Assembly: GCA_964057225.1 (NCBI GenBank)
Contig: OZ059899.1
Span: 15,190,001-15,254,000, forward strand
Source of the DNA: Auanema rhodensis
Lineage: Eukaryota; Animalia; Nematoda
DNA: 64,000 bases
Reading direction: 5' to 3'
Part shown: one piece after another, positions 56,748-64,000 of the stretch
Position numbering within the stretch: position 1 is the first letter of the stretch
Layout of the letters: each line of letters begins with the position of its first letter
Notes under the pieces: model-generated
Told to the model about the DNA's origin: nothing
Seen by the model: only the letters and a program-made list of their open reading frames with translations
Database searches by the model: none
Position numbers and translations under genes: made by a program

Positions 56748-59326
56748 CTAATTCATAGGATACTGCGGATACATCGGAGCAGACACGTATTGAGGATAAG
56801 AAGGAGATGCGATAGGTGGATTCACAGGCATCGACATTCCAACACTACCCATACGAGGATTGCCAGGCATCATTGTTGGGTCCATCATTGGACTCAGGAA
56901 ACTGAATAGTTGACTTTCAAAACAGAGCGAATGATAGAGGAACATACCGAGGATCAGGTCTACTCATAGGATGCATACTGAAATACTGGTTCTGACGTTG
57001 TTGCATCTGCTGAGCCATCATTTGTTGTTGCATTGCTGAAATAGGAAAGTTTTTGAAATGAGAAAACATAAAAACATACATCTTTGATGTTGCATTCTCA
57101 TCATCATGAACTGTTGTTGAGACATTCCAGGATGAGGCTGAAATGAAAAAAAATATTTGAGTGAATCAAACAGTAAACTACGAACCTGATTCATCATAGC
57201 ATTGCCCGGCATTTGAATGTTTTCTTGGTACCCAGGATAACTGAAAAAACTACAATGAGTAATATTTAAAAAACGGTTGGAATACCCTGGTTGCTGCATG
57301 TTCATATATGGAGGTGGCATCATGCCATTTTGTGGGTACCCTGGATGCCGTGGCTGCCCAGGCATCTGAGGTTCAGATTGCGGCTCATGAGGTGTTGGCG
57401 TTGATTGAGGTTGGTTCTGAACCTGCTGCACCTGAGCAGCCTGCTGTTGTTGCAGTGAACTAGGAGCCAAGCAAGTGGAAACAGGTGTACTAGTACATAA
57501 AGGAGCACCAATAGAACTTCCTCCAAACGACATAGCAGACGTTGTACAACCATTCGTGGGAGTAATTGGAAGATTCCCATAGTTACACGTATTACTTGGC
57601 ATAGTTGGAATTTGGGGTTGCATAGGATGAGGTTGCGATCGGTTAGGTTGAGATGGCTAAAAAGAGGGTTTAAATTACAAATTGATGTATGTGAACAAAC
57701 CTGTGAAGTTGGTTGCAATGGGGGTTGCTTGGGCTGTTGAGAAGATGATGACGCCTGGGGCTGAGGGGGTTGAATTGGATTATCGGGACTAATTCCGAAA
57801 CCATCAATTGGAGACATCGCTGATATCGATGGCTTTGCATCATACATAGATGACGATGGTTTCTGATCTAACAACGCTCCAGATGATATAGGTGGCATTA
57901 AATCACCGAATAGGTCATCATTACCCAGATCAGCTATTGCACTTCCAGTCTATAAAGATGGATTGTGAAAGCTTAATTTCATATATAAGTACTAACCATT
58001 TGAGCTACGGCTGCATCCAAATTAATTTGATCAGTGTTTAAATTAGATAAGTCATCGGTTTCCTTAGAAACTGGTACTTGAGGACTAGGTACCTGAATCC
58101 AAAAATTTGAAAAGTTAGATATGCGATTACTCACATTATCGGCACAAGAAGGTGGAGAGCATTGAGTAGCACTTGAGGAGGATGGAATGGTATGAGGACT
58201 AGAGGTTGATGGTTGCATGTGGGGACTGTTATTCATCATCATCATCATGGGTCCGTTAGTCCCGTTCATAGCTGTGGTATTTGAAGTGATGGGCCCAGAG
58301 TTAGCGCTCATTGGCCCACTGCTGGCATTCATGGGAGGATTCATCATGGTCATAGAATGTCCATTCATACTCTAAAATAAAGGTTAAAAAGAGTTACAAA
58401 ATAAGCTATAAGAACCATTGCTGCGTTCCTCTGATGTTGCTGCATCATCATAGACTGTTGATACTGTTGATGTTGCATTTGATGTTGATGTTGCTGTTGT
58501 TGCTGTTGCTGTTGCTGTTGTTGTTGTTGTTGTTGCTGCTGCTGGTGCTGCATCTGTTGTTGGAAAGCCATCCAGCGAGCATGATCAGGTGCCATCACAG
58601 GTTGTTGGTTTCGGGTGCCTCCTGAAAAGGAGTATTTGAAAAATAATTAATAATAGAAAAAACACTTTTTATATACAACAAAATGTTATAAAAGCTACAT
58701 TCTAAAGCAAAACTTACGATTCATTTCAGCAAAACCTTGTCTGAATTCTTCTCTACCATACTGATCATCACCATCGTGTCGGCGCTTACGTGATTCACCC
58801 GTTTGTGATATCTGGAGAAACGTTTTTGATTATTCAATTCAAGCACAAACAGAAAAAAAGTAGGAAAGAACCTACAGCTCTAGAATTGCTAGTTGCTGTT
58901 GCACTTCCACCGTGTTGTCCGTTAACTTGGATAGAATCCTTGGTTTTTTCTCTTTCCTTGTCCTTATCTCGCCAATATCTGGAAGAGGCAATTGGGTGAA
59001 AACATAATAAGACAGATTGAAAAAAATGAAACAAACCGTTGCCTTAGCTGTTCTCGTTCCTCACGTTCAGCTCGCAATTGAAATTCAAGACTGACCGCCT
59101 GTCTCTTCTTGGCCTCTTCCGCTTGTTTGTTCCAAATGGATAAGGATGTTTTCAGACGTTCTTCGGGAGTCATTTGCCTGCAAGAAAGATTAATGAGTTC
59201 TCTAAATCAAGTACTAGGTGAAACTAACGAAACAACATCATCCTCAGGATAGGGGGGCATTCCGGATGCCCTTTCATTAGCAGATGATGGTGATGGTGTG
59301 GCCATTGCGGCCCCACCCATCTGCAT
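56748..59326 (-). CDS. sel-8: Q/P/M-rich Mastermind-like Notch coactivator (LAG-3/SEL-8 candidate)
   Basis: Multi-exon ORF with N-terminal helix EERLKTSLSIWNKQAEEAKKRQAVSLEFQLRAEREEREQLRQR|YW, basic RKRR motif, polyQ tract and low-complexity Q/P/M/S C-terminus. Additional 5' exons are possible. Confidence 0.7.
58491..58544 (-). repeat. CAG/CAA polyglutamine tract within the Mastermind-like gene
   Basis: About 18 consecutive Gln codons of mixed CAA/CAG. Confidence 0.93.
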
Positions 59327-62300
59327 CTTTCTGAAATTGTTCAAGTTAGCATATACAAATTCAAGAGACAAAATGTTTGAGTAAAAAATACAAAAAAAAC
59401 GAAAAATTAGAAAACGAATACAAGACTTTAGAAAAGGTACTCATAATATTAGGCAAATGGTTGTCACAGAACTACGGAAGGAATTTCCCAACAATTATAC
59501 TGCGCACAAGGCACAAAAGCGTTGTTATGCAAGAAGGGAGGTAACGAATTATGACCCAAATTTTGATTTCTAACAGTGAAAACTTGAAGTTCTCCGACGA
59601 GATCATTATGAAAACATGAAAGATGTTCTAGATGAAACAAAAGCAATGTTGTGATTAATAAACAGATATTCTTCATCATTGATTTTTGCTACATCAATTT
59701 TATTGTGAGCATGTTTTTAAGTTACATGGGTTGTCCAATTTTTAACAAAAAAAGACAATTAAGAAAAAAAGGTAACCAGAAAAGGAGAGGAAGAAGATAA
59801 ATACGGCAGAAACAGCGTGCAAAACTTCAGATAATGTGTTGTGATAATGGGCAAGTGACCTATGCTGATAAATTAGGTGTCCAAATCGGCGGCATGAAAG
59901 AAAAGTTTGTAATAGCAACGACGCAAGTGCTGACAGATGGAGCTTGCTAGTAGATGGAATAAGAATGTAGTAGACATGGAAACTGAAGAAAAAGTATGAG
60001 GCACAATTGGCAGCATAAAAAGGAAATGAGAAAATGCTGTAGCTCTATCTCAATGCGTAAAATCAGACGGGATAGAAAGCTAGACAGCAAAAAGTGCTTA
60101 TTCAAATCGTAGTAATATGCAGAGAAAAAGCAAAACAGGATATAAAATCAATATTGGTTAAATAAAGAAAGTGTTAGCTTGCTAGACACTGTTGTGCCAA
60201 AGACACATTACTAACAGATGTTGGTCGATCAGACAAGAAAAGGGAGATGGTGAATATGCAGCAGTTCCTTAGTGGCCGGACTATGATGGACAGAGAGAGA
60301 ATGCCAGTACATCAGTAAATATTCCCAATTTTAACGAGAAGGATGCAGAACTTGAGTTGAAAACCAAAGATATGAGAGAGGAGAAGCTAAAAGAGTTATA
60401 ATTCCCAAACATATTAAAAGAAAACAAGAAAAACACAAAAGAAAATCAATCGGGATAAGAAAAAAGAGCGCTCGCCTCGGCAGAGAAATACTAACAAAAG
60501 CAATAAAACACCACACTACAAGCTGCCGAATTTCGGAGAAGCGAAAAATCATGGTGAAGATGAGTGCATGCCGACATAAAACTATATATTCGTATGTTCA
60601 TCCAAAACGAGATGTTTTGTGACAAGACGTACACCAATATTGTGACAACTCTGCACAGCATCATAAGATGTCAAACTGACCTACATGTGTATGTATATAA
60701 CAATAACAAAGAATTAGTAAGAATATGCAGTCGATAAACCTTTGGCTGTCACCAGAAATGGGTAAAAGCTTCGCTGTTATATCTCATGAGCTTGAAAGAA
60801 AGACACCAATGAATGGAGCAGAAACCAGGTTCGATTAATGAACAATAAATCAAAGTAAGCGGAAGATAGAGATACAGATTGATAGGGAAAAAGAGAACAA
60901 GGCAGAAAGCAGGCAAAAGAAGTCGGACAGAGGAAAATGCGAGTAGAAGAAAAGATGCAGCCGGTCAATACCCAAATCTAAAAAAAAATGAAAACATTTG
61001 ATTTACGTCAAATTTGAACGCACTCTTCTGGTATCAATATTACGAAGAGTAATTGGAAACTTGCAACCACATAACATATTGCATGTCTTTTCAAATATTA
61101 CAGGTGAAGGATGAGTAGAAATGAGGAAAAAACGCTATTCTATCCAATACAGGACAGGAAAGAGCGAGTGGAGTAAAGGTAGACACAATTAGATAGGCCA
61201 ATCGACTCAACCCTACGCCGCCAACCTGAATCACATTAGACATCGGAGAACGAATAGTGGGATATGCAGATTAACTAGATCGACAAAGATATGATATATA
61301 CTCGGCCTATTTTGAAATAAAAGTTGAATTTCGAAAAAAGGATGCATAAGATGATAGAATTCTAGTCGAATCTACCAAGGAGAGCATCTTGCAAATATTC
61401 TTCCAACTAAAAACAACTAAAGATGGAAAGAAAAGCCATCCAAATTTTGAAAAGAGTAAATTTAGTAAGAGCAGTCTTATTTTTCTTCTTTCTATCTTCC
61501 CGTTTCCTTCACATGCCTTGCCAGCGTCAAAGTCGCAGAAATCCCTTCGAACCGATTAAGGACACACATACACATTCTCAAAACGAAGCGTCAGGCATAG
61601 CTAGAATGTTATGTCGATAGCAGAATTATAAATGAAATTGAGATGTCCGCGGATCTCCCCACCACAACGAGCTATCTGGCAAGGCAATGCAAAAAGATTG
61701 TCAACCATGTTCAATATAAAATATATAAGAGAGCAAGAACAATTAAGAGAGTGGTAGAAAGGGAGGATTGCAATAAAAAAACCAACAAAATCTATTTCAT
61801 ATATAATTTCTTGTTATTAGTAGTAGTCAGACAAAGAAACTTATACCTATTACTCGTTTTCGAAAGTGCAACTCATGCAGGCATCGTGAAGCTGAGTAAG
61901 AATATTGAGTGAAAGACCAAGACTAATGGAGTAAAAGGGGAAGAAAAAGAGAAAAGAACGAGCAAGCTCTTTGGTTACTAAACGCCGGCATATCACAGAA
62001 GGTCTACAACAAAAAAAACAAAAACGTTCTTGCTTGATTTGAATACAAGAACGACAGCTTTAGCACAAGACAAACCAATTAAAATATATATAATGAACCA
62101 AAGATAGCAAGTCTAGATTAAAGTTTTCAGACAAAATGAGGACATTTCGATCATGTTAAGCTATTAAATGAGCTCTTATAAAACACTGCATTTCTAAGAT
62201 TCTGAAGGATGATTCAAGATGATTAATGATAATTAACAATGAGCGCAATACCCAAAAAAAGAAACTTGATTACAGCACAAGCATACATACAGCGAACAAA

Positions 62301-64000
62301 ATGTACAGATAGAAACACAAAACTTCGTACTTTTCTAAACAAAATTTAACGTTTCATTGAGGATTCAATAATTAGAAGGCACGGAAAAAAATTATATTGA
62401 TTTGAATGACAACTTTAACAACAATTCAGCAAGTAGCATAATCAGTGAGATTTGAAAATCACTGTAAAGGCGCGTAATACTACGGAATAAATGGAACACC
62501 AGTCATGTAATGGGTAGAAGAGAGGGTTGAGTTGAGAAGTATAATGGAAATCAGAATGGTAGACCTTCCGATAATTCATACTCCAGTCTAATCAAAAAAG
62601 ACAGACAGAAGTGCGTTTGTCATGAAAGGATAAAATGAGAAAGATAAGAAAAGGCAGTTAACAAGGAGTCATTATAAAGATTTACAAGGAATATGAAAGG
62701 ATCAGGAAGAGCGAACTAGTCTGACCCATCCACCACATGGCCATACGGAGCAAGCATAGGTTGGGAGGAGAGGCCAGAGAGACGAGAGAACACCTGGAAG
62801 TAAAGGGAGACGAAGAAAAAGAAGAAGAAGGGCTAGCACGCGACTATCGACTTGCCGTATACTAACAATAGAGATAGAGCAAGATAGAAAAGGAAAATAC
62901 CACGATATAGCGTTGCAAATAGGTCTCTCTCTACTACTGCCCCGCATGTTAGTAGTATTTCTCAATATTAATGGGTGTTAAAGGACATGAGGCAAGAATA
63001 TTCAAGACAAGGAAATTATTTGGAGAACCGATGACAACATATGTATTCTAGGCGGAATCAAACTCAAAATTGCAGCTTTTAAATTTGGCAAAAAACACAG
63101 TAGAAGAATAATGCATCTTGAAGGCCAGTATATCCGAGAGAACTTGGACTGTCAACAAGAAAAAAAAAACAAGAAATTTTAAGATTATTTAGTTAGCATA
63201 TATACGCTTGCGTGCAAAAAATATATAAAATGGTCAGCAGAAACAGAATGATTGAACTCATAACTGATAATTAGAAAGTTTCAATAGAATAAAGATGTAT
63301 GGGCTGAAACATGGACAATGGATTGTGATGGTCGTCCGGTACAATACCAAACAATCAATAAGATTGCGAACGTAAGTGACCAGGTAAAAAACCCGCGAAC
63401 TGAAGAAGATGGAGGATGAGGAGGAAAGTTCGAGGAAAGACAGAAACATTATAGGCTGAACTAAACACAATCGTTTTATAAGATCCGCAAAATGGAAATA
63501 GAAATGAAAGATAGATATGAAGAGTATAGATAAAGAGAGAGAGATTAAGAAAAGAGAGAATCATTTAGTTGAAAATTTCGTAGTGAACAAGGAATAACTG
63601 ATTAAATTGAAAAATGTTGACATAACATTTTGAAAGGTTGGAGGGGAATTTGTAAAGCCAAAATCGTAACTATAAAACAAGGATCATATTTCAGGCAGCA
63701 CGTATTGATTCCACTCATTGATAAAAAGCACTCTCGAATAGCAACATCCTCAGAAGAGAAAAGAATAAAGAAACGATATGAAAAGCAATAATGGATACAT
63801 GACGATTCTTGAAGAAAGCATTCGGTAATGTATGAAATCAACAAGTACAATCTATGGGGTTATCAAAGTCGTGACTAACTATCTTGTCAACTTTGCCAGC
63901 TATAACAAACTTCTTCTCTAACATAGGAGGCAAAGCCGTCAGAGGTCTATAAAGCAATCAAATTGGATTAAAAACAATATTATTCTTGAAACTAGAATGA

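Follow-up and report, generated by a model that had tools for sequence, protein, structure and literature searches.

A minus-strand gene in the genome of the nematode Auanema rhodensis is real and expressed, and it probably encodes, at moderate confidence, a divergent nuclear Notch coactivator of the Mastermind/SEL-8 (LAG-3) type, whose binding partners and coactivator role we infer. The claim is that the protein works like Mastermind and not that it is a demonstrated member of the family, because the helix has diverged too far from MAML1 and from the LAG-3 fragment for sequence and profile methods. The gene lies in a window (the whole stretch of DNA that was analysed) of 64,000 nucleotides, taken from positions 15,190,001 to 15,254,000 of contig OZ059899.1. 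A sequence-only reading of this window had called the protein LAG-3-like or Mastermind-like; the description is plausible from the helix-plus-disorder layout, the protein-language-model neighbours and the partner genes in the genome, and gains no support from sequence tests.

In the proposed mechanism, about 75 disordered residues would be followed by a single amphipathic helix of ~61 residues. This helix would sit in the groove between the ankyrin domain of a LIN-12/GLP-1-type Notch (the cleaved receptor) and the CSL protein LAG-1, and recruitment of the transcription machinery would fall to the rest of the protein, a long stretch rich in Q, P and M that carries the acidic DDLFGDL block.

In nematodes the coactivator that corresponds to Mastermind is SEL-8/LAG-3, a nuclear protein rich in glutamine, and the structural equivalence of LAG-3 and Mastermind has been known since the ternary-complex structures of 2006. 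The A. rhodensis protein resembles SEL-8/LAG-3 of Caenorhabditis elegans (helix in PDB 2FO1) in being glutamine-rich, in coming from the same nematode suborder and in being encoded in a genome with LAG-1 and two Notch-type receptors. SEL-8 is 490 aa long, and the A. rhodensis protein ~690 aa. The nematode Mastermind counterpart is functionally similar to the fly protein and structurally distinct from it (PMC7787167, PMC4938665), so that a true ortholog is expected to fail sequence searches. Neither a SEL-8 sequence nor an ortholog from outside Caenorhabditis was found in the literature.

Gene model, transcripts and relatives

The window has a G+C content of ~35%, and its introns finish in TTTCAG, as is nematode-like. 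Thirteen exons of the gene lie inside the window, in a model drawn by eye and then compared, over window:56300-59900, with transcript contigs that came from four public runs, all of the same study. Joints in the contigs confirm all 12 introns inside the window, exactly at the predicted positions; read on the plus strand their ends are CT..AC, and in the direction of the gene GT..AG. The transcript contigs extend 132-135 letters past 59332, and this extra sequence belongs 5.7 kb further upstream, past the end of the window. An upstream coding exon with a true ATG lies there (G000:C7:15255041-15255157, minus strand; L002:1501-1617). This first coding exon (MVPVFNPYSSFYGDFNEKPCRRPLTATQESFRYVQPPDD), drawn from the loose ends of the transcript contigs and present also in isoform P0003 of Auanema sp. 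JU1783, gives the protein start MVPVFNPYSSF... With it the gene has 14 exons and a Q/P/M-rich product of ~690 aa, as put together from in-frame exon pieces and split codons. The gene is single-copy in the 181-Mb genome.

The first intron, known from the transcript contigs, occupies 59331..64000 and runs off the window; it is ~5.7 kb long, and the remaining introns have 42-96 bases. Read on the plus strand, its part at window 60001-64000 is strongly enriched in A relative to T (AT skew +0.29). Neither an Rfam family nor a notable open reading frame was found in the first intron and its flanks. The transcript contigs begin at the TTTTTTAAG acceptor that precedes the first coding exon, which would fit a trans-splice site. 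The flanking genes, named smc-3 and xpb-1 in the sequence-only reading, are on chromosome III in C. elegans, as is sel-8, which would be at most weak support.

All exons are on the minus strand, and identities below refer to the JU1783 ortholog. Exon 1, the second coding exon (59229..59330; ..RK-MQMGGAAMATPSPSSANERASGMPPYPEDDVV-S; 91% identity), is placed by splice joints in four runs and encodes a disordered segment that precedes the helix. Exon 2, the helix exon (59037..59177; QMTPEERLKTSLSIWNKQAEEAKKRQAVSLEFQLRAEREEREQLRQ; 87%), is likewise bounded by transcript joints, as is exon 3 (58876..58978), whose opening residues, YWRDKDKEREKTKDSIQ, make up the last third of the predicted helix, as delimited in the AlphaFold2 model of the JU1783 ortholog, and which continues into a disordered linker. 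Exon 4 (58718..58811) is the most conserved block (97%) and carries a basic KRR cluster, a possible nuclear localisation signal, together with the short helix GESRKRRHDGDDQYGREEFRQGFAEMN. Exon 5 (58416..58621, transcript joints) encodes another short helix, PDHARWMAFQQQMQ, as well as polyglutamine, written as an imperfect CAG/CAA repeat. The repeat, at window 58465-58558, is longer than in JU1783, and all four transcript assemblies break there.

Further downstream, exons 6 (58135-58371) and 7 (57997-58092) encode a region rich in M, S, P and N and the acidic block DDLSNLNTDQINLDAAVAQM. Exon 8 (57701..57949) opens with the acidic/hydrophobic motif IADLGNDDLFGDL, kept in JU1783 and a candidate activation motif, and is then rich in S, P and Q. 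The C-terminal region, rich in Q, P, M and Y, is encoded by exons 9-13 (57286-57656, 57186-57240, 57080-57137, 56948-57035 and 56748-56901, the last including the TAG stop), and the 3' UTR reaches to at least ~56416 in the transcript contigs.

Searches for relatives spanned 1.84 billion cluster representatives and 5.8 billion sequences. Exhaustive HMMER with the 46-residue helix exon against the 1.84 billion representatives gave one real relative, P0001 (87% identity, E = 2e-14); a second match, P0002, was rejected as a spurious tandem-repeat protein. Word-index searches with the N-terminal region, the N-terminal fragment length class and the whole length returned nothing beyond the JU1783 cluster. 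Both P0001 and P0003 belong to Auanema sp. JU1783 and are recorded as 'unnamed protein product' (accessions CAI4230748/9); in JU1783 the gene is annotated with two isoforms, with and without the upstream exon; P0003 is the longer one and starts in the same way as the A. rhodensis protein. Exon by exon, identity to P0003 ranges from 48 to 97% (~70% overall), with the C-terminal exons at 84-95% and the helix exon among the better conserved blocks. The JU1783 locus has different neighbours on its 3' side. Single exons served as queries from the window, and the JU1783 database protein was used in place of the spliced product.

The predicted helix and its likeness to MAML1

Single-sequence AlphaFold2 prediction on the JU1783 ortholog (P0003:1-215) gives one uninterrupted helix of 61 residues, at 76-136. 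Its block-mean pLDDT is 94-98 over residues 81-130, the flanks are disordered (<50) and two short helices are predicted further on. The remaining ~550 residues are rich in Q, P and M, with the polyglutamine tract and the conserved acidic DDLFGDL block. As predicted, this arrangement of helix plus disorder is the layout of Mastermind. MAML1 (PDB 2F8X, 3NBN, 3V79; PF09596) also has one helix of ~60 residues near its N-terminus and, after it, a disordered Q/P-rich region hundreds of residues long; the helix of the worm protein is comparable in length to MAML1 13-74 (a 63-residue chain), and starts at about residue 78 as against residue 16.

A lone helix could also belong to a lineage-restricted, low-complexity, prion-like protein rich in Q and M that lacks a specific role in transcription; the helix would then be a generic spacer, of the ER/K single alpha-helix or coiled-coil kind. 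The helix is of the ER/K type in its C-terminal half (RAEREEREQLRQRYWRDKDKEREK), AlphaFold2 gives a stable lone helix without partners, and relatives were found in JU1783 only among the 1.84 billion representatives and 5.8 billion sequences, all of which points towards such a spacer. The N-terminal half, however, is amphipathic and not ER/K, with L, L, W and A at i, i+4, i+7 and i+11, and the conserved KRR cluster and acidic DDLFGDL motif are typical of nuclear activators. A spacer protein of this kind is, on the whole, improbable.

The sequence-only reading had derived the Mastermind-type helix from a peptide, ERLKTSLSIWNKQAEEAKKRQAVSLEFQLRAEREEREQLRQR, which is indeed present on the minus strand at ~59036-59161, in exon 2. 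The interval 58970-59175, to which it had been assigned, does encode the peptide and takes in intron at 58970-59036, because the open frame that had been followed (58964-59173) continues past the splice donor. The MAML1 string set beside the peptide is correct: it agrees letter for letter with residues 10-51 of PDB 2f8x_M, and the full 13-74 matches too.

Placed against MAML1 without gaps, the peptide has 10 identities in 42 positions in register. Common to the worm helix and MAML1, in nearly gapless register, are RL, R, AVS, L, ER and L.Q, followed in JU1783 by KxK, and from E/D-R-L onwards both helices carry hydrophobic residues in the same register, at i, i+4 and i+7. In contrast to MAML1, the worm helix has KTS and NKQA in place of the basic clusters RRR and RR(HH), and is without a proline at the kink position (AVS-L/Y, as against AVS-P). 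The net charge of the worm helix is +3 and that of MAML1 13-74 is +8; for the ankyrin-facing 16-mer the values are 0 and +4, respectively.

The identities of the gapless alignment stand, but the likeness does not rise above chance in shuffles, hhalign or a scan of open frames. Smith-Waterman scores against 2000 composition-preserving shuffles gave p = 0.046 for the window exon and p = 0.077 for the JU1783 ortholog; the fixed-register value of p = 0.0004 is post hoc. The alignment by hhalign had a probability of 0.13 and covered AVS alone. In a scan of MAML1 13-74 over 116,230 residues of open frames, namely every such frame in the window and in six other loci, the helix exon scored 40 and was outdone by an unrelated frame with 44; a genome of this size would be expected to contain very many equally good matches to the MAML1 helix. 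The peptide is thus real as text, yet its alignment carries no statistical weight, because every test of likeness was negative.

Profile and structure libraries gave the same picture. The MamL-1 model (PF09596, cut-off 25 bits) had no match at E<=10 to any of the exons or to the full-length or N-terminal JU1783 ortholog, and neither TAD1 nor TAD2 (PF20802, PF20801) matched any exon or the whole JU1783 protein at that threshold; the piece of exon 1 in the exon scan was shifted by one base from its frame, and its region is covered by the full-length ortholog. With the exon or the N-terminal 150 residues of the JU1783 ortholog as query, phmmer found 0 matches at E<=10 among all PDB chains, a library that included 2F8X (MAML1) and 2FO1 (the worm Notch complex). 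A structure search of PDB by Foldseek, with the N-terminal model as query, also returned no match, which is expected of a lone helix. The description of the helix as recognisably canonical for Mastermind finds no support in the Pfam, phmmer, hhalign, shuffle and open-frame results. The proposal that the protein bridges the Mastermind and LAG-3 families at sequence level fared no better: a chimeric profile of MAML1 and the two worm helices retrieved from PDB the self-match of MAML1 only, with no LAG-3 chain of 2FO1 and thus no link in PDB.

These results bear on a second alternative: a nuclear coactivator or scaffold, rich in glutamine, that has nothing to do with Notch (BCL9-like, Mediator-tail-like or SWI/SNF-associated). 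Its helix would bind another partner, and the likeness to Mastermind would be one of composition. This account is possible, though not probable. It is favoured by the noise level of all the alignment-based tests and by the loss of the basic clusters of MAML1 from the worm helix. Against it, Pfam domains of other coactivator families are absent at E<=10 from the exons and from the full JU1783 protein. CRTC/TORC and SS18, considered as alternative identities, were set aside after the full-length JU1783 ortholog gave them no Pfam support.

Language-model neighbours and Notch partners

The ESM-Atlas feature search is alignment-free, and a score below 0.9 in it is rated 'a lead only'. Queried with the helix part, it returned PF09596 MamL-1 for all three best named clusters (0.83, 0.81 and 0.79), and nine of the 10 best matches were of the same family or clan as the top one. 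With the whole protein, the listed named matches down to rank 17 were all Mastermind clusters (0.89-0.85), and the first that was not Mastermind was BCL9, at rank 20. The shared features numbered 128-149, which is under the 170 typical of matches within a family. By this rating the scores are leads; still, Mastermind, the family that the search returned, had been named beforehand out of ~25,000 Pfam families.

The same search also speaks for a coactivator unrelated to Notch. Clusters of BCL9, MAMLD1, QLQ and TNRC6 are among the neighbours of the whole protein (0.75-0.84), and a third of shuffled proteins score >=0.8 on their first match; as other Q-rich coactivators are listed too, part of the language-model signal is a matter of composition. 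On the other side stands the helix-only query, whose top three named clusters all point to MamL-1 out of those ~25,000 families. BCL9/Legless resembles the worm protein in having short helices within long low-complexity Q/P-rich disorder (language-model score 0.84), but PF11502 has no match, and BCL9 ranks under ~19 Mastermind clusters and is absent from the helix-only neighbours. For a low-complexity spacer the neighbours are also unfavourable, being transcription coactivators and not granule or structural proteins.

The coactivator reading of the Mastermind/SEL-8 type further draws on the partner genes. The genome has a single LAG-1/CSL gene (G000:C4:10866000-10870000; L010, minus strand), one exon of which scores 61.9 bits against C. 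elegans LAG-1 (PDB 1TTU/2FO1). There are two Notch-type receptor genes with LNR repeats and ankyrin exons (L011, L012), at G000:C6:9242865-9243242 (minus strand) and G000:C6:9316286-9316504 (plus strand), ~73 kb apart and in opposite orientation on the same contig. The pair recalls the linkage of lin-12 and glp-1 in C. elegans. CSL and ankyrin domains are split over many small exons in this genome. Since LAG-1 and two Notch receptors are present, a Mastermind-type partner is expected in the genome.

No competing Mastermind candidate surfaced in genome scans with PF09596, the MAML1 helix, PF20802 and PF20801. The MAML1 helix and PF20801 found nothing. In the genome-wide six-frame scan, PF09596 matched at C5:7250667 with 18 bits, which was dismissed as non-genic noise. 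A match of PF20802 at C4:7464582 (20 bits) was spurious, falling in the polyglutamine of a VHS-FYVE-UIM (Hrs-like) gene. This Hrs-like gene lies at G000:C4:7462000-7465000 (L018, plus strand), and its polyglutamine tract is long. That LAG-1 and two Notch receptors demand a partner of the Mastermind type, with no alternative candidate in view, argues against a coactivator unrelated to Notch.

Meaning for the Mastermind and LAG-3 families

A stronger claim would make the A. rhodensis protein and its JU1783 ortholog a true evolutionary intermediate, in which a residual ancestral Mastermind signal is visible to the language model and not to alignments. This we consider doubtful. If it were true, LAG-3 would be a diverged Mastermind and not a non-homologous replacement, and denser sampling of nematodes with iterated profiles could join LAG-3/SEL-8 to MamL-1. 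The homology of LAG-3 and Mastermind is not settled by this gene alone. The gene is also a cautionary case, in which a gapless alignment of two charged helices looks plausible and yet is no better than what noise yields in 116,000 residues of random open frames.

If the reading as a divergent Mastermind/SEL-8-type coactivator is confirmed, an 'unnamed protein product' would become an annotated Notch coactivator of non-model nematodes (Auanema and its relatives). It would also add a further data point on the rate at which the Mastermind helix drifts while binding in the groove is presumably kept.
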